A DNA stretch of 64,000 nt, taken from the NCBI GenBank assembly GCA_020536535.1, contig JAHLWZ010000225.1, forward strand, positions 1 to 64,000, given 5' to 3'. This document shows, piece after piece, positions 996 through 41,900 of this stretch. The stretch comes from Pelomyxa schiedti. Taxonomy: Eukaryota; Protista; Evosea. Both the position numbers and the translations under genes were made by a program. Positions within the stretch are counted from its first letter, which is position 1; every line of letters begins with the position of its first letter. Below the pieces are notes generated by a model that saw nothing but the letters and a program-made list of their open reading frames with translations, was not told the DNA's origin and searched no databases.

Positions 996-1039
996 CCATA
1001 TTCTTGAGCAATCGTTCTTTTTCATCCCTGCTCAGAGTT
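940..1039. repeat. 15-bp perfect direct repeat TCCCTGCTCAGAGTT (940-954 and 1025-1039) flanking a 70-nt segment
   Basis: Read directly from the sequence; flanking bases differ on both sides. Confidence 0.9.
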
Positions 1040-1294
1040 TAAATACACAAAGGAATGATTTGGGAGTTGGTGTGATACTATATTTTAAAAAAATCAAAAA
1101 AAGAAGAAAAACAGAAGTAAAATGACTCAAAATTTCTTGTGGGAAAAAAAAGAAAAAATGCACAAATAGTAAATACATTGTTTCCCATTACTGGTTAATG
1201 CAGAGATTAGTGGCACTGGGTTTACCAACCCAGGTCAAAATCCAAACAACCACCATTGTTCACCTAAGATTTGAATACAACCACCTTAAAGGTT

Positions 1295-1591
1295 TCACAC
1301 AGGTTTAAGATGATTACAATAAACACCAGTATACCCAACCAGCAAAATAGAGGTCTCCAGACAAAGTACCAGGCACAACATCCACCAATTGTAGCAGAAA
1401 CCAATCACAGCAGACTCCACCCATAACATACACCACTCAAAATCCAACCCTTTATCCTGTTCCCAAGAAGTAAATTTAATAAATGCCCAGTTGTGTGGGC
1501 TTACCCCCCTAATGCAGAGATTAGTCCTGACAGATCCAGGGTAATGAACGTGGACATCCCTGTAGTTCATATATGACGGGTCTGATGCCAT
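1295..1591 (-). CDS. Small hypothetical protein or first exons of a gene
   Basis: ATG at 1591 preceded by an A-rich leader with GTGACA about 12 nt upstream. In-frame 48-nt GT..AG intron candidate (gtaagccc...ggaacag). No recognisable domain. Confidence 0.3.
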   Translation of the reverse strand: MASDPSYMNYRDVHVHYPGSVRTNLCIRGVSPHNWAFIKFTSWEQDKGLDFEWCMLWVESAVIGFCYNWWMLCLVLCLETSILLVGYTGVYCNHLKPV

Positions 1592-1858
1592 TTCGTGTGT
1601 GATGTCACTTTGGTTTTTTTTATTTTCGAGTCAATGATTTCTCTGGATGATCTGAAATCATAATAATCGATTAAATTTCCATTGCGTTGGTGGGTGGTTT
1701 GTGTTTCATGCACAGACCACAGTCAGTTACATTCTGGACACATGAAGATGACTTGGGAGCAGGTGTGACTCACAGCTAAGTGTCCACACGTTGCTGATTT
1801 GTGCACCTATACTTGGTCAGGTTAGTTTACTTTGAGGGGGGAAATCACTTACAAGCTG

Positions 1859-4123: not shown

Positions 4124-4414
4124 CTCTCGTGGTCGCTGAAGCACTCCAGAGGTATAAATTATGTACAATTTTACTAACAAGCTCAAGATCTACTACTACT
4201 CATCCCCTGGGCAGCCAGGGGATTTAATTTTTCAGTTCAGATCTGATAGGTGCTGGACCAAATTGGTGCTGGGTGCTGTCACAGCACTGCTGTGTGCGGG
4301 TGGGGATATTTTTTCTCTTTTGAAAAGAGACAACCATTTTTATTGGAAAATCAGTGTTAGGCACTCCTCAGGGACATAATTACTAGGGGTACTGGGGAGG
4401 GTACGAATTTACAA

Positions 4415-7400
4415 TCATACAAGACGGTGGCTGGCGAGGTCCGGCCTGGCCCTGTTGCACATTTCACAGTAGAACTGGGACTTGGGGTTGAAGTAAGTGC
4501 AACCACCCTTCTCGGGTGAGCAAACCCACTTGTCCTTTGGGCATTCACGCCTCCCGGACCACCCAGACTCACACATGGCGCATGTGGTGTCCTGCAGGTT
4601 ATTTAGTTGAGTGGGTTGGAACTCTAGCAAGTTGAGACATACCACGGCAAGGTTGACAAATGTGCAGTTTTGGCAGCGCCATCTGTCACTTCCGGCAAGC
4701 CTCAGGGCTTCACCCAACTGCTTCGCCAGATCGCCTTCCTGCATTTGGAAATTATTCTGTTGAATGGCCCTCTTAACAGTTCGTTACCTTCTGCTTTCGG
4801 GTAAGTTCTTCCGTTGTTGGTAGTTGGACAGCTCTTTTGAATTCGGCCAGGTGCACTTTGCTGTTCAAGGCACTATTAAAATATTTTTTAAACAGATTAA
4901 CTCCTACCCGGTGTTGGCTGTATCTATCATCCTGCAGATTTCATAGTAATCGCCAGGCGAGAACTCCAGTCTTATCCAATCGAAGAATTTTCTTACTTGC
5001 TCGTACGTGAGGTGTTCATCAGAATCTTCATCAAGTCGCTGCAGTAAGAGGTGTGGGTCCAACACATGCCGCCGCTCTTTAAACACTTTTGATAATGCCT
5101 GTTGATTATTGTTAGACAAATTCCAGGTGTTGACGTCTTACTTGATTGATTTGTTCAAGGACTGCACGTGCACGAAGTTGCCTCCACTCTTGCTGAGGCG
5201 AGAAGAACCTTGCAAGAGGAGTGTCTCCCCATAAGTGCCGCTGGCGTTTTCGCAACCTGAAGCTCATCAAAAAGTGGAGGAATAACCTCTTGTCTACCTT
5301 ATGTTTTCATTGAAAAACGACAGGCGATCTTTTAGAGTTGAGGAGGCAAATGCATGTTCCAAGCAGGCGAGTTCTTCATAAAAAAAAAGTTGAGTGGTGG
5401 GAAGAGTGAGGTATGACAAACCGGAATCTGTGTAATACATTTCACAGTTGAAGAATCGTAGAGCTTGCATGCACATGCCAATAGGAGACATGGGTAATTG
5501 AGCCACCTGTAAAATGGTATTTTTCCATTTTGTTTTAACCCATACAGCAATACCTTTTCAGGAAGATAGTTGGAGGAGAAATCGAGGAGATGGCCAGAAA
5601 TGGAGTGGAGAGCCAACGACGCAACATCAAGAATTTTGTGTCTTGAGTGGATAATTTTGCGTAAGGTTTCAGCTTCGACAAGAGAGACAGCAACGAAATA
5701 TCTTTGTTTTGTTAGTATTTTGACTGTCACATGAATAAGTAAACCGGGGGGAGGTAATGGTTAGGTTCATGGCTGCCTCCAAAATACTTGGACAGAATAC
5801 TTTGGCGAGATCATCTCGTTGTGTGTAGCTGCTAGTTCCCATTGCCATACGGAAAGCTCTATCAACTGCCAAGGCAATACTCTCACCTCTTGGGAGGGGT
5901 TATGTGAGAAGATAGTGGCAAACTGTAAGCGTACTTGCAAGAGCCGCATATTGGATTTGAGCAAGTGGTTCCACACCCAACTGTGAGCTGTTTGAATAGT
6001 AGAGGGACTCTGAGGAATAAGATATCTTTGGAAATATTTGGAATCCATTCCATGAAGACAGCAACATTTTTGAGACGTCTGTCTCCCATTCCAACCCACC
6101 TTTTTTGGGTTTTTGTATGTATTTAAGAAGAAGTAAAGGGATACCTTGGCCTGAAGAAGTTATCAGATAGAAGTAAATAGTCCGGGAATGAGAGGGTAGG
6201 TTGCTCCTTACGAACACGGAAACTTTGGAATTTGTAAAAAGCCTCCTCACCACCAAGAACACATGAAGGTGTTTTTGTAAGTAGGGAAGCTTTTTGGGGG
6301 GAAAAAAACCTTAGGGTTTTGTTACTTCATTTTGGAAGGCTTACCAGACCAAGGATTATGTTGTTCGTCGTCACGGGAAAAAGCACTGACTCGTTGTTGT
6401 TCCTCTTCTGCCTCTTCTTCCGCCTCTTCCTCTGCCTGTGCTTCCTGCTCATGAACAATTTCTGCATTCAAACCCATTCTGGTTTCCTTCTCAGCTTCCG
6501 AGTTGCCCGCGTCTTCCTGTCTGGTGACTTGCTCCAAGTTCCTAAGTATCTGAGGAATAAGGGCAGCTTCCCGTTCTCCAGGAACAAGTTCCACATTGCT
6601 GTCAACAAGAGCCTGAATTTTTTGTGTGTACTGGTGTGGTCTTGGGACATGGTCTTCAACTGCAAAGCTGACTATCTAACTCAATTCAGTCTCGTAATAA
6701 GGGTTAAGGGAAAAACCTCTCGGAAATGTTCCACGCAACGGCATAGTTCACGTTTATTTTCAGTATCGAAACGCCTAAGTCTAACCATTTCATTGCGGTC
6801 TGTAAACCTCCTTTCCTGGCAGTGCACTTCCTCTACCAGTGTTCCAAGCGCTTTTTTCCGCCATATATTTTGCAATTCCTGATAATGATGTTACCAATAC
6901 AAAAACAAAAGATATGGTCTTAACCTGTGAACTCATTTTTACGAATTGAAGACTTTCCATTCTCATCGAGTTTATAAGAAGCCACGCTGGAACATCAATT
7001 TCAGGTTTTCCAGTTCTAGTGTCAAAATATAAGTAAGTGAGACAAGGAATCCAGCAACAACTTGTGCAATCCTAATTCTTGAGCAATCCTATTTTCAACC
7101 TCGGATATAATGAACAAGTGTATAGTCATTCCCTTTCCAATCCCTGTGAATAGATGATTATTCCTCAACAAGTTCACAATAGAAGGAACCTCTCATTCTG
7201 TATGCTCCTTGGGCATAATCCCTGAATGTCATATCTTTGCCCAAAGTTAACACGGCACGAGCACTGGCGGCTTGCTTGATGTCCATACCCGTTGTATGCA
7301 CCTAAAGTCGTTAGAAAGGTGGAAGAAAAGTATTTCAACCTGATCATAAAATGTGAATCTCCTTTCAGGCCCGATACCACATTGGGCAAGGTTCACAGCT

Positions 7401-10400
7401 CTCCCGCTTCTGGTAAGTACCATTTGCCTGTCTGCTCGGTCAAGGTAGACTACACCTTCCATCCATTCTATTGATGAGGTCAGGCAAATAATTGGAGGAG
7501 GAGTAAAGACCAGGAAGATTTTGCAGCATGAATTGAGCAACTTCTTCATTGTTAAGGCCAGTGATGAGGGCACCTGTGTCTATAAGGGCATGTATTGGAG
7601 GCTCAGCGACACAGATATCATGCAAGAGGCTTTTTGCAGTCCATCCCTTACCAACATCAGCTACCATATGCAGGCATTATGTGAGTACCTTTTTGAAGCT
7701 GGCAGTAACAATGGTTGGGGAAGTGAGCACGTTTATTATACGTCCATCAGAACCAGGTTCATATTTGCATTCACCCAGATCAAGTGGTAATAAATTAGAA
7801 GGAGTTCCTGAAAAACCAATTCGCTTTCCAAACAACAAAGAACTTCCAAGTTCATGCCCAGATGCACTGATCTTTATGGTGATGTTAAAGTATGAATTTA
7901 GGGGGATGAAAGTACTTTAAGTTTTTGGAAGTTCATGCACGCAGGGAAAACATGCTGGCACAGGTAATAGTGCATCAAATGGGGAAGGAACCGTATAATG
8001 CCGAATAGCTATGGATGTTACAAAGAATTAAGATGAATATCTTTACCTGCTCTAGTTGTTTGGGATCATTTGGTTGGAACAGGGCTAAGGGAAGAATTGA
8101 AGACGAGGAACTCTTAGAAAGAGATTGCCTTGCAAGTGATAGCCAATGATTAAAAAGTACAGACGCAGGCCGTTGATCTCTAGGGCCCACCTGAACAGCT
8201 TAGTCCTAGGGATGAAACGTGGGAGAAGGGAGTCACCTGTCGACTGTAGTCTTGTTTGAGTTGGGAAATGACTCTACGCAAATCACTCTGACGGACTCCT
8301 TCATATCTGTAGGATAGGATAGTAAGACCAATAACAGCATCTGGATGGGCAAATTCTGAAGATCTGCTCGGCACATCTTTTCCAATGAAAGGGACCTACT
8401 TTATCTGAGAGTGAAATAATTGTCCCTGGTTCACATACTGCCATCAGTAATCTGCTCTGTGGTGTCCGAGGGTCTACGGCAAGGAGGTCTGCTGGTGTGA
8501 GAAGACCATAGGACACTCTGTTGATCTTCGACAAAATGTGGGGTAGAAGATGGTGTATCCAGTTGGATGCTAAGTTGAGCAGCTTTTTCGATTCTGGTAA
8601 AAGACCTTCCTCTACCTAAAAAGAGTAAGGAAAAAGAGGTTCTGGGTTGGGTTGCAACCTGCTGCCTCAACGGTTCGGGATCATTAGTTTGTAGGTAGGT
8701 CAGGAGCACATCAATGGGTGCACGTACCGCACCAACAAATGAGTTTAATAGCCACAGCATTGCCCATTGAGACATAATTGGCTTTATTTTTGCGTTATAG
8801 AAGTTTGAATCCAGAAGAACGAGATGAGGATTGCGTTGTAAACTGTGGCAGGTATATCCTTCCTCAAGAATAGTTGCAAGTTGTCCAAGTAACGCTGTGG
8901 GTGTGGTATTGAGTTGTTTTGCAGATTCCATGTAAATTGAAAGGTCTTCACAAACAGAAAGGCGTGTATGGTAAAAGATAGCATCAATGAGGTGAATTGG
9001 TAGATCCCAGCGGTATCCAGAAAGGTCTATTGCCTCCTTGTGTCCAATAGGGAAATTCAGTTCAGACCGCAATGGGTGCAGCAGAACATCAACTTCATCC
9101 ATGATGAGAACACCATGTTTCCACAGATCGAGTATTTTAACGAGAGCATCCGCCATTTCACTTCTGGCAATCATCTGGTCTCGAATCCTAATAATTTCAC
9201 GATTTCCTCTTGCACTCTCACCAGGCAAGAGAGAATTGAAGTCAAATTGTTCTATGGCGTGCAGTTGCTCAACAAACTTCAGCATCAGGGATTTGATGGA
9301 TTCAGGTGAAGCACAGACTATGCCGTGTTGTTTTCTCGCACTATCTAGCTTTGAAAACAGTGCCGCTACTAACTCACTACTGTCCTCCATGCTCCTGTCA
9401 AATTGCAAAGTGAAAATGTGTTTGACTACAATTGTGCTGAAACAGCTTCTCAACACATTCCGGGTTTGTTCAAGAAGTGCAGTAGGCATAACTTGAGTAA
9501 CTAATGTATTCCCATCGGCCAGAATAAGGGCTAACAAGGGCCCAACCACAGTTGTTTTCCCCGCCCCCATAATCATTTGTTGAACATCAGAGCCACCAGT
9601 CTTAAGTTTATTGACAAAGGATTCCACCATTTCCACTTGTCTTTCACGCAATAGGATATCAAAAATATACTCGAATAAAAGGAATCGTGGGTCAAATACA
9701 CAATCCTTGCTATCGGTAACTTTCCTTATGTAGTGCCTGTGACAGGTAAGTGTATCTGCAAGGGCAACAGCAGCATGGTTCAGTCTATCAATCATAACTT
9801 TACTTGCTGAAAGGGACTGTGATCTCCTTAGTGAGGACTCCGGCTGTGGCTGATCATGTGCCACGGTAGGAGACAAATTTTTTAGTAGAGAGCGAAGTGT
9901 CATTGCCTGCGAAATTGCACGATTTGCATGAGTCACACGTGATGCACGCAACATGACATTAGAAACAGTTGTAATTACTCTTTCTGCATCAGAAATGTAA
10001 GGGTTAACTGTTTTCAGGTCTGACTGTGCTGTGCGAGAAAGCAGTGAACCACACATAAAGTTAATATCAAGGAGAGGTTGCTGCCCAGCCATACGAAGCA
10101 AAAGGTAACGGTATTTATTCCGCAGCTCGTCACTCACTGGTGAATTAGAGGCTGGGTCACCAATTTCAACGTGATTCGAGCTGGCAACAACAGTACGTAT
10201 CATCTCTTCCACAAGTTTCGAGTCTCTATTTTGTAGTTCGGACAGTACAATAATAAGTGAATCCAAGGTCTCTATTGCCCTCGTAATATTTGCCGCATTT
10301 GGATTCAAAACGTAGGAAGTAAGTTGTTCAGGAGAGCAATTTTCAATGTGCGAGCTGAACTGGCGAGAGCACATCTCCGCGTAACGTGCGGTATCTTCTT

Positions 10401-28160: not shown

Positions 28161-30612
28161 ATGTCACGGAAGGCGTCGTCAGACCCAGCGTTGGAGGTTT
28201 CACCTGAATTGCAGATGATACTAATTCGACAACAATTGGCTGTGCGTGCCAGAGCTAATTGATTGACTACTATTGAATTGAAAAACGCCTTTGACAGTGG
28301 GAGGAATTGCCATTGTAGTGATTAAAATACTTAGGGTTGGCTTGTGAAAAAAGGTGGGGCTGGGATTGTGAAACTGCAGAGGAGATACTTCTATATTGCT
28401 AATAGGTTTTTCTGGTCCTATGCACTTTCCCCTAATGGTTTGGTGTCACTCCTTGATTCCAATAGCTAACCTCTTGATAAGAGGTGAAGCCAAAAGGTGA
28501 TATTGACCTTAGAACAGTCAACAAAGTGGAACTTCTACCTGTAATTCTCCCTAAAGCACCATTTCCTTGTTTTAACTCAGCTTCCCAAGTTAGTTGATGA
28601 ACTTAGCTTTATTGTTGTGAGTGATGCTAGACCTAAGCCCTATATTCTCAAAGCAGCAACAGGGTCTGAAGCGAAACTCTGGTATCTTTAGCAGGTGTTT
28701 TTCACTTTCTTCCCTTTTTAAAAAGGGTCACCTGTATTCTTGAAACCGTGGAAAAACTGAAAATTCGTGTGAGTTTTGTTTGCTCTGCCTTTATCCTGAA
28801 TTCGAAATAGGAAAATGACTCCGTTGCCAGGTATATCGTTGTTAAATTACTTGACCTCATTCTTTCCTGTTTGATAACACACTTCATACCCAAGTATGCA
28901 GTCAATATGTTGATTTCTTGATTTAAGAAAAGGAAAATTAAGGTTCCTTAGACATTCTGAGCTTGAATGATCTGACTGGTGGTTCCCTTAAGTTCATTAC
29001 CGCAGTATCCCCTTCAACATCAACAGAAACAATTCCACTCCCAACCCAAAAAACGTGGGTTGCTCCTGTGCGGTCCAAATCGCACCAGAGGATTGCTTAT
29101 TTCAGCACCAGCAATAGACGACTTGTTTCAACAGAGGATGACACACAATCTGCACGTCTTGAGGACCCATCAACATTATTTCCTCATGACTACATAGCTC
29201 CTTCCTTTCCCGCTGCTGTAGTAGCAGCAGGTATCACTCTTCTCCATTCATTCAAAACACAATTTTATTAGGTATTCCAAGTGCGGAGGCTGTAGCAGAG
29301 GTATGTCTAGAACGCGCACAGTCCTGTCCAAGACCCAATGGCATGACAATAGAAGAAGGTTTTTTCCCAGTGCCACCTCCTAGTCTATTTTTACACCAAC
29401 AATTTCCCAATCAAGCTGCTGCCATACTGCTCTACACATTTGATTTTGGGTCAACGTCGAAAGTGGAGAATCCTTATGCATTGGTTAACACAGCACTTGT
29501 CACACGGAATATCTTAAAAATGCGGAATGTACGAGACTTCTTGTGGTTGTTGCTCTCGGCTTTACGAAGGCTGGAGAGGGTTCAGTATCCTCTGCTCTAC
29601 CGAGGCATCACGAAACGAGTTGATGTGAACAAGTACCACCGCTCCTCAACAGTGATATGGCACACTTTCTGCTCCACCACAACTGACATGCAAGTGACTC
29701 AAGGTTTCCTTACTGACAAGGTCACCAAGGAGACATCCGGAACTTTGTTTGTTGTCCGCGATGCATGGGGATATAACATACAGAAGTACAGCTTCATGCC
29801 TGGTGAACAAGGTGGAAAGTGTTGAACTTCATTCCCCTTCCGTCTAATCTAATTCAAAAAGAAATAATTCTCGAGCCCGAGTTAGAATTCCAGGTCTCCG
29901 GTGTGCTTAATTTGCCATTAGTAGTTGTAGAACTTTCCATGACACCGAATTCACCCCTCATGCTCCAAAAAGAAATAAGTACGCCTTATATATTCCTGGT
30001 TATTCCACTCCAATTGACACATATTCTTCCAGATAAGTTCCGAAGCACAGCCGCAATAGAAAATATCATTACCGTAGAACACAAAGAACCAGAAACCCAA
30101 GCTCCCCTTTGTGAGACAACGATTGCCACCCGGTTTATAACACCGGAATCCACTCCGGAACCCACCAAACCACCAGATTCTCCCTTTGCGTCACGCACAT
30201 TTCCTCTTACCACTGAACCATCATCGATTTCACAATCACCATCAACCACAACAACTACCCCTCCTCCCTCCCATAATAGTTCTGGCACAGCGGAGCCACC
30301 GTCACTACCACCTGCGCCATCAACACCCACAAATCACGGTGACGTCATAACCTGCCTTGTTCAGCATGACAACCGCAAGTACCGGCTTAAGGTACCAAGG
30401 CCTACTTGTGTGGCTGAGGTGAACACACAGGCACTCAAAGTTGCTGGAATTACTGATACTGCAAAGATTGTTGAGGTTTTTGAGCAGACTCTCAATGAAT
30501 GGGTGGTTCTTGATGGTATGTGCGAAATATCCTATACTTCATTCTCAATTCCCAAATAGATATGGACCTGGTTCTTTCAAACAATGTTACTAAACTGCGA
30601 ATTGTCGATTGA
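28161..30612 (+). CDS. PH domain - NAD:arginine-type ADP-ribosyltransferase (ARTC) - Pro/Ser/Thr linker - small ubiquitin/PB1-like domain
   Basis: PH: LAGWLVKKGGAGIVKLQRRYF, GDIDLRTV, YILKA..SEAKLW. ART: AILLYT, LLYRG (R at 29601), FCSTT (S at 29673), GTLF, PGEQ|EIILEP (E-x-E split by intron 29812-29861). Confidence 0.8.
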
Positions 30613-30985
30613 TCAATACTCACGGACGAGGCAGATGTGACTGATCCAGTTGTATCTCTGGACTCGGTACAACTGGCCGTTCTTTCCACAAGTTGTCTGC
30701 TGTGAGAAGAAAGTCTTTTGTTGGACATTTTGGTGTTATTTTAAAAAAGAAAAGAGGAAAATAAATGATAGAACTCCGGCTACCAGTTAATGTCTGCAGC
30801 AATATGCTGTGGTCTCTGTACCCCCAGAAGGCCGCACCATTACACCCCCCTCAGGCAGTGGATAATCCCCAACAAATTGGTTGTTCAATTTCCAAACAGT
30901 TACATCAATACTATTGGAGGTGTTTGGAAAGAATGGTTTCAAACATTTTCTTCCCGAAATGAGTGGTTTTGTGGTGGTAAATGTA

Positions 30986-32355
30986 TCAAGGTAAACTGAT
31001 ACTGTTGAGCTGGGTCATTACACTGGAAGTTCGGGTCTTCGCATATTCCAGGCACAGTTTCAGAGTTGTTGGTTCGATGGGTGAACCTGTGAAAATGTCA
31101 CACAACAGTCAATCAGTTTTGGATTGTTGTCCAACCTCCAGGTTTGTAGACGTCGCACAATTGTCCCTGTTCGTTATAAACAATTGACATAAAACCGGAG
31201 CTCAGCAATTCTTCTTCAAAAGTGGGATCGGCGATAATCTGACTGAAGATATTAACTTTAAGGTCAATGGGAGAGGAGTTACTCTTCAAAGAAAGCAAAA
31301 GTCAATGAGACAGGGTGGTGGAGAAGGGATAATCGCCGTGGCGGTGATTTGGTAACTATAAGTGGCACTCCGTCATCAGAGACAGTGCCACAAGGTAATT
31401 CAACTGGATTGCCAGTAAGATAACCACACTCACCTTGTCACATACCAATTTTGAGAGAGGCCAGGAGAGCTAAAAGGCAACAATCAAACGCATTTCCGTC
31501 ATAGTCGACACAATATATATCCACGAAAATATACCTGTTTGTGTTTTATTCTTGGGGGCGGAACAAATTCATACACACCAAACAAATTTTCCTTCTTGGT
31601 CGAACCACAAGTCCTGGGGTCGGAACAGTGGCATTCTTTTTTTTTGGTTTGAGGGTTGATGGGAAAAAGGTATAAACCTAGTGATAATGGAATTGAGTCG
31701 TTGTGTAACTGAGCTTATGGTGTGCCTCGTAAAATCATCTTTCGCACTTCTGAATTTTGAGTTGGACATTCCTCCAATTTCAACATTGACAACTGTTCAA
31801 GTACCAGTGAATAAGCTCCTGGGCTGTAAGCCAGATAACAAACCTACATTACAGCCAGAAATAGCCGTGGAATTATCTCGTTCAGATCCAGTCAGGGTGC
31901 CTGAGGGAGGCTCCAGGTTTGCACTCTGTGACACCACAGAACCCCCTCGCCCAACTTCCAGCTTTATTCCCGCCACTGCAGACGTGCCACTCCCCATTCT
32001 AACAAATGCACTGCCATCAGCACAACTGCTCACGGGTGCCGTATTAATCAACCCAGTCACTGACCTAATAACAATGACTCAACAAACACTCCACACGTAG
32101 TGGATACTACTGGATCATAGAGAATATAAATTATAAGCGCTTAAAATGATGAAAATAAAAATAAAAAATAAAAAATAAAAAATCAAAAAATACACACGTG
32201 TGCGGTGAGGCAGTAGTGTCGCGACCACCCTTTGACGTTGTCACAATTGTGGGAACCCTTGCCGTTGTAAGAGACCTACCATCCGGCCTCACACCCTGAG
32301 CAACAAACCGCTTCAAATACTCCTCAGGATAGATCTTGCAAAATGCAGCGCACAT
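30986..32355 (-). CDS. RRP43: Exosome complex component RRP43 (RNase PH family)
   Basis: FCKIYPEEYLKRFVAQGVRPDGRS, GSAFVRMG.T.AVAGIKLE, DIYCVDYDGNAFDCCLLA, IIADPTFEEELL. Confidence 0.9.
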
Positions 32356-32516
32356 TCGCAACGTGTCACACTAGAGAGTCCTGGATTTGGCCTTCACAGC
32401 TTTGTTTACGAAGACAGGGCCGAGGTGTCACGCTGAGCACCGATCAATTAATTGGCTTTAATTTCGAAAAACAAAGCAACTGTTGTAGATTTGATCTTAG
32501 GCTAAGACGAGGACTT

Positions 32517-33804
32517 TCAATCTCTGTGGTTTGGGTTGGGTGGTATATCACATTCCTCAGAGTCGGAACCTGAATCGGAATTGGGCATAGAAGGGAGGGA
32601 CCGTTGGGATACGGCTTCAGCTTCACATTTTTCGAGGTAGGCTTGTTGGGCTGTATGCGTACATAGTGTCATGGGAATAGAAAGAAAACAGAGGAAAGAA
32701 ACCGGCAATGACAGCGGCCCCATTGGGGCATTTTGAGTAAATGGTCAGAAGTTCGGAGTTTAGTGAAATGAAGGCATGGCCCCATACAAATTTGCTTAGT
32801 AGGAAACGGGCATCATGCTCGAATCCAGTGATGAATAGCGCTAGGAAGTACATTAATGATGTAAAACGGAGAAGGAATTCGCACTGGCTGCTAGTGCTTC
32901 GACACAAGACAGCTGTATTGGTTTTCCATAGTTTACAGGATTTGCAGCTACTAGCCAAGGGAGAAGCCTAGGGTGTGCTCCCTTGGTCCTTGCGAGAGGG
33001 GTAGTATCAATTTGAGCCCACGAACAGTCAATAGCAGCAGCACCGTTGTGGAGAATAATATCTCTTGGAATAAGGAAATGGTTTCACATGAGTAGTGAGT
33101 GTGACTGTACAAGAACTCTCACTTAAACATAATGCTAATGAACCACAACTCCTTTACTTTCTTTCAAAAAAAGAAAAAAAAAAAACCCGAATCAATAAAG
33201 CATTGAGTATGAAGGCCAAAAAGAGATACCTATCAGCAGGAGATACAGTCATTGTTCCCGTTGGGGACAGAACCACGCCACCAAAAACAGCCGATAGGCT
33301 CAGCTTCTTTGCCAGCTTCATTCTCATCAACTTCCTCCCAGTGCACCGCTTCGAGTCGCACTGGCAAAAGTCCCACAATCCCAACTTGATCCCGACGACC
33401 TTTCCCGGAGTATCCCCGCCCTCATCGTCGTCCTCCTCCACCCCCTCCTCGGCCTCGTCCCCTTCGCTGCTGCTTCTGTCTCCTCCTCGCCGTGTCGTTT
33501 TCTCTCTCGCTCTAGATTCAGATGCCTCAGAGTCGCCATGGCTCTGGGCATCACGAGGCGGCGCCAACGGGCCAACGGCAGCGCCATAGACGTCGCTTCC
33601 ATCGACACTCGCTGTAGTCGTCGTCGTAGTAGTAGTACTCGACGCTGGTGCTCTGGGCGAGGGCTCGTGGAGCGAGGACTCGGCGGTGGCGTACTCGCGA
33701 CCTTGTGTGCCCCCGCGTCGCTTGTCCCCTCCTCGCCCTCCTCGCGAGGACCCGGCGCCGCCGCGCGCCCCTCCGCCTCGCTTGCCCGCGCGGATTCGTT
33801 TCAT
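32517..33804 (-). CDS. TSR3: 18S rRNA aminocarboxypropyltransferase Tsr3
   Basis: [22 protein letters not shown]...[48 protein letters not shown]; acidic tail. Confidence 0.95.
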
Positions 33805-34018
33805 CGCCGGCGACTGTGACTATTAGATATCAGATCGATGATCGGTTTTTGGTTTCGAGACGTTTGGTTGAAATCCCAAACGCAAACTTACGGACGAGAT
33901 CCCTCTTTGCTGTGCCTCCGGAATGTAGAATCTCAGGGACAGCACATTGTAGAGTTCAATTCATTCGGCCGTTAATTTTATTGTTGGTTTGCGTTGCTAC
34001 GGTTTTATCTGGTTGGCG
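33805..34018. promoter_or_regulatory. Putative 214-bp bidirectional promoter between TSR3 and the GIY-YIG gene
   Basis: Head-to-head ATGs at 33804 (-) and 34019 (+). Confidence 0.5.
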
Positions 34019-34970
34019 ATGGCAGCAACTCCTCCTCGACCGTCACGACGTATTCCAGAGCATAGATTTTGTCTAGATGTAGTTGAGACAGCCGTTCGCC
34101 AGTTTGGTTTGTGGTTAAAACTAGTTTACTTACAAGTGCACGCCCGCTGTCAACTGATACCCATTCTTCATCTCTGTTTTTTTTTTCCCCCATTTTATTA
34201 CAGCTGAAGCGAATCAAGTGACACAATGGGGATATATGCCAGGGTACCACTTGTGCCACGCAACTGCCAGGTTGTGCATCGAGGCAAATTTTCCACTTGT
34301 GAACGGACTGCTGCGGATGCACTACAACAACAGCCGGTCTGAAAGGGCTGCGCTTTCTGCCGCACTGTCGAGCTATAAAAGTCGTGTTCGATGGGACAGG
34401 CCTGACATACCCCTCAGACGTAACTGCGAGGGTGTCACGGGCTCGAACTGGATGTATACCTGGCAGTACAAGTCAATATCCGTCTATGTCGGCTGTACTT
34501 TGGCATCCAACAAGCCAACAATAAACAACAAGTTCCTCCTTAGGCGCACAAGGCAACACATTCAACATGCATTCAACCCTAACAACGGTGAATTCTGGAA
34601 CAGGCTGAGTGCGTTCATACGTGTGACCAACCCATATGACTGGTCAATAATCGCAGAACCACCGTCAATTTGTACAGCCCTCAGTCAGAGCCTAAATGAT
34701 TCTCTGAACCAAATGCAACTGGGCATACAGATTAGCCAAACCACTGATTCCCGGGTGTTTGAGCAACTGCTGATTTTAGGCCGTGACACCCTTACACCCA
34801 ATGGCCTAAATGAGAGAACAACTTTTGCACCAGGCACACCATCACCAGTAGTACCACACCAAGGAACTCCTCCAATTAGCGAAGATTATGGCAACTACGG
34901 ATTCTCATCCGACGAAGAAGAACACTCTGAGGATGAAGAGGATGACGATGTGATTGACGAAGACTCCTAG
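34019..34970 (+). CDS. Stand-alone GIY-YIG endonuclease (Penelope-like-element type) with acidic tail; 2 exons
   Basis: SNWMY-x9-YVGCT (34449-34499), RRTRQH, and E-x3-I-x4-TLTPNGLNE (34761-34814). Exon 1 (34019-about 34111) joins in frame through a gtttgt...ttacag intron ending at 34203. Confidence 0.75.
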
Positions 34971-35101
34971 CTCAATCACATAAATAAGTGGTATGAATAC
35001 ATAGTTTAATTGTGATTTTGTCACGCACCACATATTTGCATCCCAAAACGATCTTTCACGAATCACGTTACCATAAACACCCAAAACAAGAGAAGATCAA
35101 G

Positions 35102-36481
35102 ATGCAACTGATCGAGCGTGCCACAATTCGGGGGGATCAGCAGTTTGTTGCGCTTGCTGTGGGGAAGTGGTCGCCGCGGTGCGGGGAGCATAGCGCAGCG
35201 AGGCTCCTGACCCACCACGTCCTGGTGGAGCAGCTCGGCAAGGAGTGGATCGCGGGGGCCGCCCGCTGCTGCGTCGCGTGGTGGCACAACTACGCCAAGG
35301 GGGGCACCGCCACGGTCGCGGCGGTGCGGGTCTCCCACACCCTCGGCGTCGTCGGCGCCCCGCTGCTCCGCGACCTCGCCCCCTGCCTCGGCGGCTCCCG
35401 CCTCGCCCTCGAGTGCTGGGTGACGGGCGGGGGCGGGGGCCTCGGCGGGGGGCCCCAGGGCGGCGGGCGCCTGCGGGCGGTGGCCGCGGCCGCCGAGGAC
35501 ATGCACTTGATGGACGTGGAGTCCGGGCGGCTGCTTGCCACTCTTGTGGGGAGGGGCAGGGGCTCGGTGGTGGCGAACAACAGGTGGGTGGTGCAGTGCT
35601 TCCCGCCGAGCTTCAGCGACGATAGGAGCCCGGACAACAATCTGAGAATATGGAAGCTACCCACGGCTCATTCTTGCTCATGTTCATCGTCATCGTCATC
35701 TTCTTCTTCGTCGTCGTCAACATCAACATCAGAAACTACTGCAGATAGTAGTAGCGTGCTGGTAGCAAAGATGGCGTCTGTCGACCCTGAAACACTGAGA
35801 ATTACGGCGAGTTGGATGAAGTTCGGCCACAGATACACTGCGTCATGCAATTGTGAGGATGGTCCTTGCGATGAGCTTCTGGTGTTTGGAATAACCCGCC
35901 TAGCCAGCCTAACATACCCCATCACATTTGGAGTCCTGCTGGATATAAACATAGCCAAGACGTATGCAAGTGGCGTTGCTGTTGTGAAGGAGGTTGCGAG
36001 GTACCCCCTGCCCAGGTGGCCCTCTGTTGTGCAAAACGTGTTCTGTGATGAAGACGGAGTAAGGGATGTTATCTGCATCAACAACTCTGATGAGGGCACA
36101 CTGCTGATGGACCCACAGGGCGTAACAACCACACTCCCTTGTCCTGGTACTTGTCTGGCTGCCGTTGATGACCGCCACTTGTTTTACAAATCCAAGTCGA
36201 CTACTCCCAATACAATCCGGGGTACTGGTTATTCTTCAACTTCTTCTTGCTTCATATACAACACTGTGCAACCACACAGAACCCCAGTGTGTGTGCAGGT
36301 TCCGCATACCACCCTCCCTATACTCTCTTCCTCCGGAATTTTTATGCTCTCCTGTTCAGTAGGAGACAAGGAGGAAGCAAACAGATTGGTGATGATGGAT
36401 GCTTTGTCTGGGAGGATATTCCTCCAGACACAGAAATCTCTGACTGCCTCCTTTTTAAACGTGAATTTCCTATGCTTTTAA
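35102..36481 (+). CDS. Intronless orphan-family protein (459 aa) with N-terminal DQQFVALAVG..PRCG..S motif; beta-rich C-terminal part
   Basis: Single long ORF, GC-rich 5' half, internal poly-Ser tract. Function not recognised. Confidence 0.75.
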   Translation: MQLIERATIRGDQQFVALAVGKWSPRCGEHSAARLLTHHVLVEQLGKEWIAGAARCCVAWWHNYAKGGTATVAAVRVSHTLGVVGAPLLRDLAPCLGGSRLALECWVTGGGGGLGGGPQGGGRLRAVAAAAEDMHLMDVESGRLLATLVGRGRGSVVANNRWVVQCFPPSFSDDRSPDNNLRIWKLPTAHSCSCSSSSSSSSSSSSTSTSETTADSSSVLVAKMASVDPETLRITASWMKFGHRYTASCNCEDGPCDELLVFGITRLASLTYPITFGVLLDINIAKTYASGVAVVKEVARYPLPRWPSVVQNVFCDEDGVRDVICINNSDEGTLLMDPQGVTTTLPCPGTCLAAVDDRHLFYKSKSTTPNTIRGTGYSSTSSCFIYNTVQPHRTPVCVQVPHTTLPILSSSGIFMLSCSVGDKEEANRLVMMDALSGRIFLQTQKSLTASFLNVNFLCF

Positions 36482-36603
36482 ATCAAACCACTGTAACCCG
36501 TGACTGTCAATTCGCCTATCGACGTTCGGGGAATTCAGCTGAACTCCAAGAAGAGTTCTCACCTTAACTTGGAATTAGGGGAACCGTTTTCAGGCCTTTT
36601 TAA

Positions 36604-37198
36604 ACGCAACCCATCCGGACAACAAACAAAACAACCACTACTTCAACAACAGAGGCGGTTCCCACGACAGTTCGATGCCCAGCGTCACACATGTGCATGT
36701 GGAGTGGCATAGAGGCTGATTTGGACGCACACCTGGCAGAGTGCCCACATGCCACCGCGAACCCGAAAATCGATTTTCAAGTACCTCCTCGACCAGAACA
36801 GGAAGCTCAAGGAGACGAACGCCAGGCTGGAGGAGCAGAACACCAGGCTTGGCGATCAGATCAGCAAGTCCACGGTCAACCTGCAGTTCATTACTTTGTG
36901 GAGGGAAAGTCCTTTGGATTCTCTCATGTGTGCTGCATCCGCTTGTGCCCAGGTGACACATGTGGCACAGAGCAAAACGACAGAGTTAGCTGGAATTTGG
37001 ATGGAACTGGTGGATACTGCACAGGGTGTAGCTGTGACCAGGAAAGATTTAAAAAACTCATATGTTGGGTTTAAGGGGCTAGAGAGAGTAAAGACTTTCT
37101 TTTTACAAAACTTGTGCCGAAGTAGATCAGATTTGGATAGTGACCACCACTTTGTGGGGTGTGCTGGGGTGTTGATGGTTGTTGTTTTACTTGTGTAG
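36604..37198 (+). pseudogene. TRAF/SIAH-type zinc finger plus coiled-coil fragment with a frameshift
   Basis: VRCPASHMCMWSGIEADLDAHLAECPH in one frame continues as SIFKYLLDQNRKLKETNARLEEQN in the next; the break is near the A4 run at 36766-36769. An in-frame stop lies upstream at 36601. Confidence 0.5.
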
Positions 37199-37518
37199 TA
37201 AGGGAGAAAGAAGCCCGAATACTAAGCACAAGAGTTTATTGTTTATTACTTTGTTGCTTGAGTAACTACAATGACGTTGTTCCTAAAGGCACTAGAATCA
37301 GTTCAAGGTGTCCCCTGAATCTCCCTCCCAGGGTAACAGATTCCCGGTAGTTTTCCCAGACATCCATCAGTGATTAGAACCGGACTTGTAAACCTCGGGG
37401 CAAGGTTTTTGGGTTCTCAGCCAGACCACCTCTAGGCCTTGACAACAACGTTTTTTTTTCTTTATGATGCTTACATTTTATTGGTGACAAACAGGAGGAA
37501 ATTAGACTGCGGGTTGGG

Positions 37519-38815
37519 TCAGTTGAGAAGGGGTTTTTCTTTCTTCCTTGTGTTTTCCTCAGTAAGAGGTTTCCATGTTGCAAATATGATGAGAACTGCC
37601 GGAACGAGATCAAACATGAATATATAGCAGAACTTGAGGGCGGCAATGGCAGATGACTCTGACTCGTCACCTATAACAAAGGTGATAATTAGAACCAGAA
37701 TTCCTCTAGCTATAAAAACAGAGCTGAAGATGGCTGCTAAGATAATTATCTAAGGTACAGTGAGTGGGGACTATTTTTGCAGTGCAATTGTGGTAACCAC
37801 ATAGTGGATAAGCTTGGGAAGAGGAATACTCACTTGGCGAATGACTTTAGAACGCATTCTGTGCACAGTAGCTCTGTTACGATTGAGGAGGTAACAAAGG
37901 CAGCACCCAAGAATCACATAGCCTGAACGAACAGTTTCAGCCCGTTAATGACAAAAAAAGCAGGTGCGACCTGTGCCCAGAGTAATATCCAAAGTGGAGT
38001 TGAATATTGCTTCAGTGTGATGGTAAATGGTTGTGTGACCCTCATCAATAAACATCAAAAAGCAAAGAAGAAGCCAAATCGAGTACATTATAATATTCAG
38101 TACAATGTGAAGCTACGACTGTGAGTGAAATATATCATTTCTTCATGAAAGGGTTACAAGTAATACCTTGAGAGTGAGTGAACGCTTTTGCTGCTTGGAT
38201 AGAGATGGGACAATGAGCCAGATCCAGAAACAAAAATTCAAAGAATAGGCAGTAAGAAAAATATACCCAGGGAGGCTCTGTATTGCAAAAGGGAATAAAA
38301 AATTTCCCTTATATATTTCAGCATATTATTAGTCCACACCACAAACAAAACACACCGACAGAAGTGTTTGAAGAGGCTTTTGTTCACCCCAACTCAATTC
38401 AAAGTAGTGGTCCGAGTATATTGACATTTCCAAACCACGGCCTTGGGATGAAACATAAACAACTTTTTAAAAGGAGGGTTCTAAAGAGACATACTTAATA
38501 AAGGCAGTGGAATCAGTAAGTGAGTTCCCTTTCTCACTGAAAATCCCGGCGGCGCCGCCTCGAGGAAGAAAACATACACAACTCCTTTTTTTTTTAAAAA
38601 AAAAAGTTACCAGATGAACGGACCAAAAAAAAAGTCACAGTACTGGCAACGGCAAACAAGAACGTGATGTAAAACAGGGCCACGGTCGTCCACAGCATCG
38701 CCAACTCCCACGTCGCTGTAGGTGCGAACGAAAACAACGACGAGTCACTGGTAGAGTTCACTGCTGACGACGACGAGGACAACGCCAACGGTGCCCTCAG
38801 TACCAACCCACACAT
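37519..38815 (-). CDS. Multi-pass (7TM-like) membrane protein, THH1/TOM1/GPR137-like
   Basis: Hydrophobic exons: LWTTVALFYITFLFAV, SLPGYIFLTAYSLNFCFWIW, IIILAAIFSSVFIARGILVLII, FMFDLVPAVLIIFATWKP. Confidence 0.6.
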
Positions 38816-38928
38816 CGCGCCGATGCAAAAAAGGTTAATTACAGCGAAATTACGGCGAAAACTTCCCGCTTCGTTTCGGAAAACGAAGATCAATCGAATT
38901 TCGAACCCAAGTTGGGGCCCAAGCTGCC

Positions 38929-41900
38929 ATGACGAGCAACGGAAACAGCAGGAACAGTAAAGCCAACAACAACAAGAGTAACATTTTCGGGCGCAACGTG
39001 GTTTCTTCTGTGGAGGTTATTCACCAAGTGCTGCTACACAACTTTACATTAAAAATTCCGAAAAGATTACCAGAGCCACACGAAATCCATTGTCTCAACA
39101 CATTCGCGCTGAATGGTATTTCTTTCTTTCTTCTTCTTTTTTTTTTTCTTTTTCGTTTGAAAATCCTCAACTTATGTGCGTGCTAGTGGGTTTGGACCAA
39201 GGCCTGGAACATGCTCTACTTGTAAAGGGGACTCTTCAGATGAGTCTGACAGCTTTCCTATGCCAGCAGAGTCAATAAAAGTAGCCCCTTTAGAATGAAA
39301 TTTTTTTTTTTTTAACTCCCTTGTGCAGAAATTTATACCTAGGCAGACGCAAACACGTGGACCATCATCCAGGATTTCAAGGGTTCCACAGGTGCTAAAC
39401 GCACACGTTGTTAGACATACTCCCACAGATACCACTGAACAGCTACCAGCTCAAAACCAACATCCACAAACGCAACTACCTTCAGGGTGTCAAACACAAC
39501 ACCCCACCCATCCCCAGCAACAGCAAGCACAATCACAGTTGCAATCACAGTCACTCCTACAGAGACGCCCGAAGCAGCAAATAGGGTTACAGGAACAACG
39601 CCAGCAAATACTAGGAATATCGGAAACAATTAAAGATCACATCCAGTCGCAGGCTTGCTCTCTGTCACCCAATGGCAATGCGGCATCTGGTGGAAGTGTA
39701 ACTATCCAGACAGAACCAAGAAAAATTCAAACAGAATGTCTCCCTGCCAGGGAGGTTGTAGATAACCTCAAATTAGTGCCTGGCCGTCAAGTTGGTACTC
39801 TATCTAAAATTCATCAAATCTTTACTCAAGAATGTAAGAAAATATTGTAGAAGGCTCTAAATTGGCGTCACATGTTATGGTAGACACCATTTTTTACACA
39901 AGAATAACCCAACAAACAAAAAAAAAAAGTTGTCCCTCCCTCCTCCTCCTGAAACAGTTTTTGGTGAATCTGTTATGCGACACACACCTGAACCAACTCT
40001 TTCACACACTGAATCAACAGAACCAGCGATACAATCACCCCCAATGTAACCTGTTTCTCTCTCTGTTCATTAAATTTACTTTGCAGAAAGCGGTGTGTGG
40101 TTGTGAAGAAAGTGATCCCCAGTGAGGTGAGAAGTTGAGTTATTGAAATGAATTAACTTGCTTCCCCAACAGAAGAAGGCTCAAGCCACGCCTCCCTCCC
40201 CACCCGTTCTTCCCACAACTCCTTATGTCACAATAATCTCAAAGCAACGGGAAGAACAACAGCAAATTAATGATGCTGCCAATCGATTACTCTCAGATTA
40301 CTTCAAACAGAGTAGAACGGAAAAGGTTTCTCTCAACCCCTCTAGTTCACACTCTAATTTCATTTAGAATAGTTTTAGTACCCCTCTTACTGGTAATATT
40401 TATTGTCCAGTTCCCTTCATCACTGACTATGGCATACAAAAAGGGCAGTTATCTGAAGAGCACGGAGCAATAACAAGCAGTATTGGGGAATTTGACCCCA
40501 CCCCCATCCATCAGCTGATAGCCACATGCCGCAAAGAAAAAAATAAGTTTGACAACGAATGGCTCTCAACAGAGTGTGCAATAGCTGACAGTGTAAGAGC
40601 ATCTGAGATTGAGGAGGTCATTCAAGCAGATGAGCATTTGTGTACTGTGCAGCTTAACATGGAAGTACTGAAAGATAAAGTAAAGCGAGTAGTGGATAGA
40701 GCTGTGAAGACCTGCCAAAATCCACACAGTCCCTTGTTAACAGAACCTCCGCCATTCAAGTATGTATACGGTAGTGTATGATTAATGAACGCTCGCAGGA
40801 TATCCATTTTACCTTCAACTCGCGTTGCAATGTCTTTTGAAACAGATAAACGTCAACCACAAAGTGCTAGAAACATCAAGTCTGTTTCTTTGTCAGTCAA
40901 TTTCCTCCTTACAATATTAGGCTCCATTTCCCTACAGATATTATTCCTAAGTATCAGTAAAGAAACGACAAGTTTTAACCCACCACAGAAAGAATCCTGA
41001 AAAGAAACCTGTTGCAATAAGAGCTAATCGATCACATGTGCGCCACCACCATGTTAGAATGACTAAAACAATTTCAGGTGAAACCTCCTACTGTCTCACG
41101 TGTGTGGGACCACCTGCTAAGTCAAAAGGAATTTATGGATGCACCTAAGAAGCCCAAAGTCCCATTGCCACAATCTCTGACGTCTTTATCTGCATTTCAA
41201 AGACATTACCCTACAATGAGGTTAATTATGTCAAAAATGAAAGACTTAATAATGGAAATTAGAGCTATCAGCAAATCCGATAATGATACTCAAACTCTTC
41301 CTGAGCAGCAGGATGCTTCCACTTCCACTAGTTTAAAACAACCAACCCCACCTATTCCTGAAGAAAGAGATCTTGAGCAAGAACAAGACAATTCTAGAAA
41401 TAGTAAATCCAGCCGAAATACTACAGCAAATGAGAGAGTTACTCCTAACTTTCTCTCCGAAGTACAACAAGCCCTAGATAAATCTCCTGCTAGCGACTCT
41501 GTGACTCGCATTGAACCCCCAGTTGTATTCACTCTTCCAAAGGACACTGAAAAACTTAAAGAAGAAGCTCGTAGAGAGTATCTAAAAATAGTTGGTACGT
41601 TTACTTCTATGTTAATTTCTCTAAGTCTGGTAGACTCCAGGCCAAACCCAAGAAAGCAGGTCTTTATGCAGTTGTATTGACCATATACCAATCCTTGCAC
41701 AGATTCCATTTGTGGAAGGGTTATCCTTGTTTAATGTGTCAGCTGAACCTGACCAAGAAGCTGAGAAGCCTCCCATATCTACTGCCTCAGAACTCCGTTC
41801 TCATGTTACCTTCAAATTCTGAGTTGAAAACTCATCCAAACAAATAGGTTCTCGACCCCCACACAAAGCAGGCAATTGGTGATGAGATAAGAGATGCTTT

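Follow-up and report, generated by a model that had tools for sequence, protein, structure and literature searches.

A single-copy, spliced orphan gene of Pelomyxa schiedti with a candidate, highly diverged GIY-YIG nuclease domain

Known GIY-YIG systems and the Pelomyxa gene

The GIY-YIG superfamily is defined by the GIY and YIG elements, a central Arg, and a C-terminal Glu, all within ~100 aa (PMC1564403). Canonical endonucleases of Penelope-like elements (PLEs) carry in addition a zinc-finger-like CCHH motif whose two Cys lie directly between GIY and YIG, unlike homing endonucleases (PMC8557442). The HE_Tlr8p_PBC-V_like group (cd10443: PBCV-1, iridovirus, and the Tetrahymena Tlr8 Maverick) and the Chlamys-type endonucleases have been described as a "cloud" that lies between the homing endonucleases and the PLEs (PMC1564403, PMC8557442). 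Among host proteins, SLX1 has a RING finger and no C-terminal Asn; ankyrin and LEM domains are found in ANKLE1 (PMC1564403).

We analyzed a gene at positions 34019-34970 of a window of 64,000 nucleotides (positions 1-64,000, forward strand, of contig JAHLWZ010000225.1, Pelomyxa schiedti assembly GCA_020536535.1). An earlier note, made from the DNA letters, had described it as a stand-alone, Penelope-type GIY-YIG endonuclease gene. The 284-aa product resembles I-TevI-type endonucleases (PF01541; phage T4/T6) in the order of Tyr, Tyr-x-Gly, Arg-x3-His, a hydrophobic third strand, Glu, and an N-G-x-N loop, with spacings of 9 residues against 10 from GIY to YIG and 16 against 15 from Glu to Asn. 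It differs from them in having no significant HMM or hhalign match, in two insertions of ~10 and ~25-30 residues, in the lack of conservation of Q46, and in a Leu that replaces the Tyr of NGYN. The candidate domain is central, whereas that of I-TevI-type proteins is N-terminal, and instead of a NUMOD, zinc-finger, or HTH tail the protein has a basic N-terminus and an acidic tail. Moreover, the gene is nuclear, contains an intron, and is present in a single copy; it is not borne by an intron or a phage.

With the PLE endonucleases (cd10442; Penelope/Poseidon, Neptune, Nematis, Naiad) the gene shares a eukaryotic setting and a GIY-YIG core followed by R, H, E, and N (PMC8557442). Judged by the published motif description of these enzymes, it is set apart from them since it lacks both the CCHH motif and the upstream CX2-5CxxC finger. 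The nine residues between Tyr114 and Tyr124, TWQYKSISV, include no Cys, and the Penelope-type assignment does not hold. The motif that the earlier note gave as established for PLEs was incomplete, as it omitted the two Cys between GIY and YIG (PMC8557442). The gene is also neither fused to nor near a reverse transcriptase (RT), and it is single copy, without pseudo-LTRs or a hammerhead.

By description, the cd10443 and Chlamys-type proteins are similar to it, as diverged GIY-YIG domains that are associated with eukaryotes or viruses and do not have the zinc-finger motifs of PLEs, and this group is, on that comparison, a plausible kind of source for the amoeba gene. No relative of the protein was found in viral contigs or phage records. 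SLX1 and ANKLE1/LEM-3 (PF01541, PF22945) represent another class, that of host-encoded, single-copy GIY-YIG proteins acting on DNA structures; in a six-frame scan, their family models gave no match at the locus or elsewhere in the genome.

Gene structure, transcript, and genomic setting

The gene is a real, expressed, spliced, and single-copy gene of P. schiedti (Table 1). RNA contigs from three single-cell libraries cover 33967-35000 (X1), 34327-35003 (X2), and 34564-35012 (X3). A SMART template-switch oligo tail (GTACATGGG) precedes position 33967 on the + strand, which identifies the RNA as + strand and position 33967 as its 5' end; the 3' ends fall at 35000-35012. The 5'UTR is 52 nt long and has no upstream ATG; once spliced, the transcript reads as a frame of 284 aa from its first ATG. 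The exon carrying this ATG joins the long ORF (frame 0, with its stop at 34968-34970) in frame. The transcript termini lie 30-45 nt beyond the stop codon, giving clean gene boundaries. A DNA run (X4) matches the assembly at the locus.

Table 1. Coordinates of the features of the gene and of its neighbor (positions in the window)
Feature	Positions	Strand	Details
Transcript	33967-35012	+	RNA contigs; 5' end marked by template switch
Coding exon 1	34019-34106	+	ATG, 29 codons, and first base of codon 30; joint seen in RNA
Spliceosomal intron	34107-34203	+	97 nt, GT..AG, phase 1, pyrimidine tract before AG
Coding exon 2	34204-34970	+	Includes stop codon; from sequence and spliced translation
TSR3 neighbor	32626-33804	-	Head-to-head; PF04068 29.8-31.4 bits, PF04034 41.2 bits
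His/Cys motif HLCHATARLC	34248-34277	+	Residues 45-54, in basic N-terminal region predicted helical
GIY-like and YIG-like strands (putative)	34446-34502	+	NWMYTWQY (Tyr114), SVYVGCTL (Tyr124, Gly126); block trace
RRTRQH	34542-34559	+	Arg144, His148; R-x3-H spacing as I-TevI Arg27/His31; 10.7-bit block
PYDWSIIA, candidate third strand	34632-34655	+	Matches homing-endonuclease F-x-F-x-I-L-E block, 4.8 bits
SRVFEQLLIL ... NGLNE	34749-34814	+	Candidate metal-binding Glu216 helix and Asn232; block alignment
Pro-rich linker and Asp/Glu/Ser-rich acidic tail	34824-34967	+	Residues 237-284, pI 4.05

The intron predicted by the earlier note is skipped in RNA contig X3 exactly as expected. Contig X1 retains it, so that one of the two intron-spanning contigs is unspliced, and retention stops the frame at 34205-34207 (ORF 33989-34207, ending in TGA). 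The GC content of the intron is 38%, against 49% in the exons. The gene has this one intron, compared with a mean of 7.4 per gene in the genome.

The head-to-head arrangement with TSR3 was also borne out. On the minus strand, the RLI-type domain (PF04068) lies on the first exon of TSR3 and Ribo_biogen_C (PF04034) on a later one, and 214 bp lie between the TSR3 ATG (33804) and that of the gene (34019). No single-cell RNA contigs covered the TSR3 side. The surroundings consist of ordinary host genes and the composition is host-like. In the 52.4-Mb assembly the gene has a copy number of one at both the protein and the DNA level, and a search for paralogues in the same genome at E<=10 returned the gene itself only.

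The description of the gene as standing alone, without RT, terminal repeats, or hammerhead, agrees with our searches. The 284-aa protein contains no RT, and RVT_1 has no match on the contig, whereas its matches genome-wide, at least 86, all lie on other contigs. No flanking direct or inverted repeats were found in 31000-38000, where there are only short chance repeats, and no Rfam family, hammerhead included, matched at E<=1 in 30000-39000. Nothing supports the proposal that the gene belongs to a split or non-autonomous mobile system, as it is single copy at the protein and DNA levels. Domestication, which the earlier note also proposed, is compatible with the observed expression and splicing.

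Relatives, motifs, and the GIY-YIG reading

As far as sequence comparison can tell, the gene is an orphan, with no detectable relatives in the collections searched. The profile libraries Pfam, NCBIfam, and PHROGs and the PDB sequences gave zero matches even at E<=10, and a word search for homologues of the 284-aa protein gave none. An exhaustive HMMER (phmmer) search of 1.84 billion proteins returned as its sole genuine match an 85-aa fragment of the protein itself (P0001), which had been called on the gene's own RNA contig. Five other matches, to tandem-repeat or Ig-repeat proteins, were rejected as spurious, their scores being sums of weak repeats. Searching phage records with tblastn gave only matches at E ~5, to thymidylate synthase and hypothetical genes, and there was no relative among viral and metagenome contigs.

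The sequence features described earlier are where they were said to be: the quoted motifs, read directly (SNWMY-x9-YVGCT at 34443-34499, RRTRQH at 34542-34559, and EQLLILGRDTLTPNGLNE at 34761-34814), the 97-nt GT..AG intron, the His/Cys motif, and the acidic tail. The N-terminal region (residues 1-95) is basic, with a pI of 9.9 and predicted helix; no known zinc-finger pattern fits its HLCHATARLC motif, for which no family was found. The core has a pI of 9.0, and the basic character of both regions fits nucleic-acid binding.

Set against the superfamily definition, the spacing WMY-x9-YVG is as expected, and the C-T that comes next fits the common pattern Y-I/V-G-x-T/S/A. The central Arg is supplied by Arg144-x3-His148 despite an atypical distance from YIG: Arg144 lies 18 residues past Gly126, against 8 past Gly19 in the reference alignment. 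At the C-terminal end, Glu216 and Asn232 are 16 apart within EQLLILGRDTLTPNGLN, compared with E75+15 in I-TevI. Relative to the reference there would be two insertions, one of ~10 aa behind the YIG strand and one of ~25-30 aa ahead of the Glu helix. The claim that the catalytic residues are intact stands to the extent that they are all present and in canonical order, but the protein lacks a GIY-YIG profile match.

Indeed, neither PF01541 (cut-off 22.6 bits) nor any other clan member matches the 284-aa protein significantly. The earlier note had taken the lack of an HMM hit as speaking against its reading, and at the HMM level this is formally what we found in Pfam, NCBIfam, PHROGs, and PDB sequences. 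Six-frame scans of the genome with PF01541, PF20815, PF19239, PF22945, and a homing-endonuclease profile that we built were silent at 34019-34970. The genome's only match to the four clan Pfam models, a 12.8-bit GIY-YIG-clan fragment on C436 with three stops, is unconvincing.

An HMM of 214 GIY-YIG domains scored 4.6 bits against the protein (P=0.0021, empirical 0.00275). With standard HMM scoring (P ~0.002-0.006), the ORF ranked second among 337 natural ORFs taken as decoys from 247 kb of the P. schiedti genome, another ORF scoring higher. The hhalign probability was 3-6% (P 0.006-0.016), and HMM and hhalign both anchor on SVYVGCT. A narrow I-TevI HMM gave no real alignment (P=0.12), and Smith-Waterman profile alignment with relaxed gaps gave p 0.006-0.4, varying with the penalties. 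In phmmer comparisons with 226 GIY-YIG proteins, the mean top-20 score was 5.5 bits, against 1.0 +/- 0.8 for shuffles, 0 of 300 of which reached it. Single-sequence AlphaFold2 did not yield a model that could be used, with a pLDDT of 37 when the whole ORF was modeled and of 34 when the domain was modeled; these low-confidence models draw a beta-hairpin over the GIY and YIG strands, which is unreliable.

We also made an order-constrained block alignment, whose blocks were derived from the I-TevI-like family and not from the query, with boundaries set by the analyst. The reference family was of I-TevI type only (226 proteins), with an alignment of 27 I-TevI-like domains in which Y6, Y17, G19, R27, H31, Q46, F56, and E75 are invariant and N90 nearly so. 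In the query, Y, Y-x-G, R-x3-H, E, and N match in order, and a W stands at F56. Compared with shuffles, the block score had a p of 0.002-0.018 with a flattened profile and 0.001-0.003 with an intermediate one; with a sharp profile, 0-3 of 20,000 shuffles reached it (p down to <=1.5e-4). At all three weightings the ORF ranked first of the 337 natural ORFs, above ORFs 4-8 times longer. The motifs stand hardly above chance by standard HMM scoring and above it in the ordered-block test. At p-values of 1e-3 to 1e-4, a proteome of 19,876 proteins leaves room for several chance look-alikes.

The ORF had originally been picked on account of its motifs.

Language-model features point to the same superfamily. 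Residues 72-210 scored 0.93; virtually every one of the 100 best-scoring named clusters belongs to the GIY-YIG clan, and the nearest clusters were small bacterial GIY-YIG proteins, named GIY-YIG/PF01541, and not PLEs. For the 75 N-terminal residues the best score was 0.78, with no consistent family. The match shared 148 of 256 features, below the 170 typical of true same-family matches. The ordered-block statistic and the language-model features, the only evidence favoring a GIY-YIG fold, make it plausible.

Alternative explanations and significance

We give about an even chance that the 284-aa protein contains a real, divergent GIY-YIG domain. On sequence grounds, the likeliest identity of the central ~120 aa (Tyr114-Asn232) is a stand-alone GIY-YIG nuclease domain that has diverged to an extreme degree and that is of the homing-endonuclease (I-TevI-like), not of the Penelope, kind. 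The protein would consist of a basic helical N-terminus (1-95), the predicted GIY-YIG core, and an acidic tail, the core presumably adopting a beta-beta-alpha-alpha-beta-alpha fold. If active, it would cut or nick DNA by the one-metal mechanism of I-TevI and Hpy188I, in which Glu (with Asn) holds Mg2+ and Tyr, Arg, and His activate water and stabilise the phosphate. DNA binding would come from the basic N-terminus, and the acidic tail might either mask that region or bind chromatin proteins. The probable ancestor of the gene is a homing-type endonuclease, mobile or viral, whose mobility has been lost. Taken as a whole, this explanation, a lineage-specific three-part protein with a diverged homing-type GIY-YIG domain in its middle, seems to us evenly poised between right and wrong. 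More tentatively, and in our view rather doubtfully, the gene may be a host-captured homing-type or virus-derived nuclease that founded a new, HMM-invisible GIY-YIG family and now serves in cellular DNA processing. After its capture, such a nuclease would have acquired a basic N-terminal region for DNA binding, two insertions in the core, and an acidic regulatory tail.

The chief alternative, to which we give a substantial probability somewhat short of even, is that the protein has no nuclease fold: it would be an orphan encoded by a young or fast-evolving Pelomyxa-specific gene with coincidental GIY-YIG-like residues and an unrelated function, for example that of a basic/acidic nuclear or chromatin-associated protein. 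This would account for 1.84 billion representatives yielding only the protein's own fragment and five repeat proteins, for the absence of library HMM matches and the 3-6% hhalign probability, for a plain HMM score that is unexceptional among the 337 natural ORFs, and for the lack of a confident fold (pLDDT 34-37). A few chance cases are moreover expected among 19,876 proteins at p 1e-3 to 1e-4, and the YIG-to-Arg spacing exceeds that of every aligned reference by ~10 residues. However, six defining positions occur in order with family-like R-H and E-N spacings, the block score ranks first of 337 and is reached by only 0-3 of 20,000 shuffles with the sharp profile, and the language model matches a single clan at 0.93 against 0.78 for the N-terminus.

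Very improbable, in comparison, is an origin by domestication of a Penelope-like retroelement endonuclease, as is the view that the gene represents the nuclease half of a PLE system that is split or non-autonomous. The order of the GIY-YIG-like residues would suit such an origin, CCHH is missing from some PLE clades (Chlamys, Hydra), and the amoebozoan Physarum has been reported to carry a weak EN-like domain (PMC8557442); the genome is also rich in RTs, with at least 86 RVT_1 matches. Against this stand the Cys-free linker and the missing CX2-5CxxC finger, the copy number of one, the absence of RT-attached relatives and of RVT_1 matches on the contig, the lack of pseudo-LTRs, of tandem or inverted repeats, and of a hammerhead, and language-model neighbors that are bacterial GIY-YIG proteins and not PLEs. 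We can practically dismiss the idea that the locus codes for no protein, its long ORF being a chance feature of transcribed non-coding DNA or of an error in the assembly: one of two intron-spanning contigs is indeed unspliced and there are no homologues, but once the 97-nt GT..AG intron is removed, the first ATG reads in frame into 255 open codons, the stop codon lies 30-45 nt before the end of the transcript, and the DNA run and the assembly agree.

Whether or not the domain is a nuclease, the proposed connection with Penelope retroelements can be dropped. Should the resemblance prove a coincidence, the case would be a cautionary one, an eye-catching set of catalytic motifs having been matched by chance at about 1 in 1,000-10,000, and such motif sets therefore need evidence of fold or activity. 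If the domain does work as a GIY-YIG nuclease, few cases would compare with it in Amoebozoa as a stand-alone, host-resident endonuclease of the superfamily. Having diverged too far for any profile library to recognize, it could then serve to start a new family model, and the gene would illustrate how a nuclease becomes domesticated in an intron-rich protist.

A spliced and transcribed gene beside TSR3

The query locus is a real gene. The earlier note had described it as a spliced gene lying head-to-head with TSR3, and both points hold, as does the position in the window of every string quoted there. Splicing in phase 1 fuses exon 1 to an open frame that runs up to 34970, and the product is a protein of 284 aa. 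The intron has a GC content of 38%, against 49% in the exons, and the predicted joint was found exactly in one RNA contig, where the 97 nt are skipped. A second RNA contig keeps the intron, in which case the frame would stop at 34205-34207. All RNA contigs are confined to the gene, and the same three libraries gave no contig on the TSR3 side. Directly 5' of 33967, one contig carries GTACATGGG, the end of the SMART template-switch oligo, on the + strand. Hence, the transcript is on this strand and its 5' end lies 52 nt upstream of the first ATG. At position 34238, the RNA contig X3 (depth ~3) has an A where the assembly, matched by a DNA contig, has a G; the change turns ATG (Met41) into ATA (Ile) and could represent an allele, an error or editing.

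Coordinates of the query gene, its neighbours and the RNA contigs covering them
Feature	Position	Strand	Basis
Query gene, exon 1 (88 nt)	starts at ATG 34019	+	sequence reading
Query gene, intron (97 nt, GT..AG, phase 1, pyrimidine tract)	34107-34203	+	sequence reading
TSR3, adjoining gene	ATG 33804	-	Pfam matches (PF04068 and PF04034)
TSR3, stretch of exon 1 encoding the N-terminal extension	33400-33800	-	
RNA contigs, query gene	33967-35000; 34327-35003; 34564-35012		three single-cell RNA libraries, one study
Downstream ORF (459 aa)	35102-36481	+	
RNA contigs, downstream ORF	35831-36465; 36184-36367		

The start codons of the two head-to-head genes are 214 bp apart. In TSR3, the RLI-type domain is preceded by a long low-complexity N-terminal extension, which is encoded by the first exon, is rich in Gly/Arg, Thr and acidic residues and has 67% GC. 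Within the TSR3 gene region, which lies on the opposite strand, seven nucleotides absent from the assembly (CAAGAAC) follow position 33109 in the DNA-run contig X4; either a polymorphism or a difference in assembly may account for them. Downstream, the query gene is followed by an uninterrupted ORF lacking a Pfam family, with a long Ser run and a GC content of 0.76 at 35200-35600. It is expressed, with a template-switch tail before 35831, and is a second intron-poor orphan directly adjoining the query gene.

The window belongs to the single-cell assembly of Pelomyxa schiedti, which counts 52,367,397 bases on 5,337 contigs. Published values (PMC8887013) are 52.4 Mb on 5,337 scaffolds, with 19,876 proteins and an average of 7.43 introns in each gene. 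The composition of the query gene is host-like. Its single intron, against this average of 7.4, would be compatible with a young or acquired gene.

Evidence for and against a GIY-YIG fold

The query protein is without relatives in the collections searched. There were no matches at E<=10 in Pfam, NCBIfam, PHROGs and PDB sequences, none by word search, and no relative in phage records, viral contigs or metagenome contigs. Exhaustively searched with HMMER, 1.84 billion representatives yielded the query's own 85-aa fragment, called on an RNA contig of the gene, and five repeat proteins, which we rejected as spurious because their scores were summed from many weak matches.

The GIY-YIG superfamily is defined, within about 100 aa, by its two eponymous motifs, an Arg in the centre and a Glu towards the C-terminus; most families add an Asn (PMC1564403). 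We took I-TevI from phage T6 and gathered 226 homing-type GIY-YIG proteins, whose core alignment has Y6, Y17, G19, R27, H31, Q46, F56 and E75 invariant and N90 nearly so. Standard profile checks of the earlier note's assignment were weak: beyond the lack of library matches, hhalign gave P=0.016 and 0.0063 (probability 3-6%), a narrow HMM P=0.12 and a 214-sequence HMM 4.6 bits (P=0.0021; empirically 0.00275 with 20,000 shuffles), and by HMM score the query ranked only second among 337 natural ORFs (247 kb of the genome). Neither four Pfam models of the GIY-YIG clan nor a homing-endonuclease profile gave a signal at the locus when run across the genome. Six-frame scans of the whole genome with PF01541, PF20815, PF19239 and PF22945 revealed no convincing GIY-YIG, SLX1 included; a PF19239 (GIY_YIG_domain) fragment elsewhere (contig C436, 20916-23804; 12.8 bits, E 2.3, three in-frame TGA) is probably noise. 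Compared with the family, about 10 residues are inserted in the query after the YIG strand and before the Arg helix, and about 25-30 ahead of the Glu helix; this is more than ordinary gap costs absorb and explains the weak standard scores.

We chained seven ungapped blocks of our own design in fixed order and let the spacers vary freely up to 45 residues. They fell on NWMYTWQY, SVYVGCTL, RRTRQHI, NNGEFWNRLS, PYDWSIIA, SRVFEQLLIL and NGLNE, so that Tyr114, Tyr124-x-Gly126, Arg144-x3-His148, Trp176, Glu216 and Asn232 fill invariant family columns. Against 20,000 shuffles, p was 0.002-0.018 with an entropy-flattened profile and 0.001-0.003 with an intermediate one, and 0-3 shuffles reached the score obtained with face-value family frequencies. 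At all three weightings the query ranked ahead of 336 other natural ORFs, including some of 1,066-2,375 aa. In phmmer runs of the query against the 226 sequences, the 20 best scores averaged 5.5 bits (shuffles 1.0 +/- 0.8; none of 300 as high). Language-model features, which are independent of alignment, gave 0.93 for residues 72-210, and the 100 named clusters closest to this part belonged almost without exception to the GIY-YIG clan; the whole protein scored 0.88-0.89 and the N-terminal 75 residues, an internal control, 0.78 with no consistent family.

The main rival is a Pelomyxa-specific orphan with coincidental GIY-YIG-like motifs, to which we give somewhat less than an even chance. The ORF was picked for its motifs, and p-values of 1e-3 to 1e-4 in a proteome of about 20,000 proteins lead one to expect a few chance cases. 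Furthermore, residues 72-210 share 148 of 256 features with their match, under the level typical of true same-family matches, and neither of two AlphaFold runs gave a usable model (pLDDT 37 and 34). Given these caveats and our own design of the blocks, a real, very diverged GIY-YIG fold, all origins together, seems to us at best slightly favoured, and its homing-endonuclease-like reading evenly balanced.

Relation to Penelope-like elements

Canonical Penelope-like element (PLE) endonucleases differ from homing endonucleases by the CCHH motif, with two Cys directly between GIY and YIG, and in many of them a CX2-5CxxC finger is also found upstream (PMC8557442). In contrast, the query linker, TWQYKSISV, lacks the Cys pair, and the protein has no such finger. 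Nor does the gene have the other marks of a PLE: it encodes no reverse transcriptase and is single copy in the assembly, at protein and DNA level alike, with no flanking repeats, no Rfam match nearby, hammerhead included, and none of the genome's at least 86 reverse transcriptase (RVT_1) matches on its contig. Many of those matches lie in stop-free open frames of 500-1,540 aa (e.g. on C121, C1462, C746, C1656, C208 and C659) and indicate apparently intact retroelements.

Hence, of the earlier interpretation, a real, stand-alone, spliced and expressed gene, plausibly with a putative GIY-YIG-like fold, is retained, but not its Penelope type. PLE clades without CCHH are known (Chlamys, Hydra), which leaves room for a remote PLE origin; yet nothing in the data points to one, the nearest neighbours by language model are clusters of small bacterial GIY-YIG proteins, and we regard such a derivation as very improbable.

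Proposed action of the protein

One-metal DNA cleavage is established for I-TevI and Hpy188I. If the basic core (pI 9.0) takes the GIY-YIG fold, it would nick or cleave DNA by this mechanism, with the metal held by Glu216 and Asn232 and the scissile phosphate acted on by Tyr114, Tyr124, Arg144 and His148. The basic N-terminal region (pI 9.9), in which AlphaFold draws helices with low confidence, would contribute DNA binding, and the acidic Ser/Asp/Glu tail (pI 4.05) may be regulatory.
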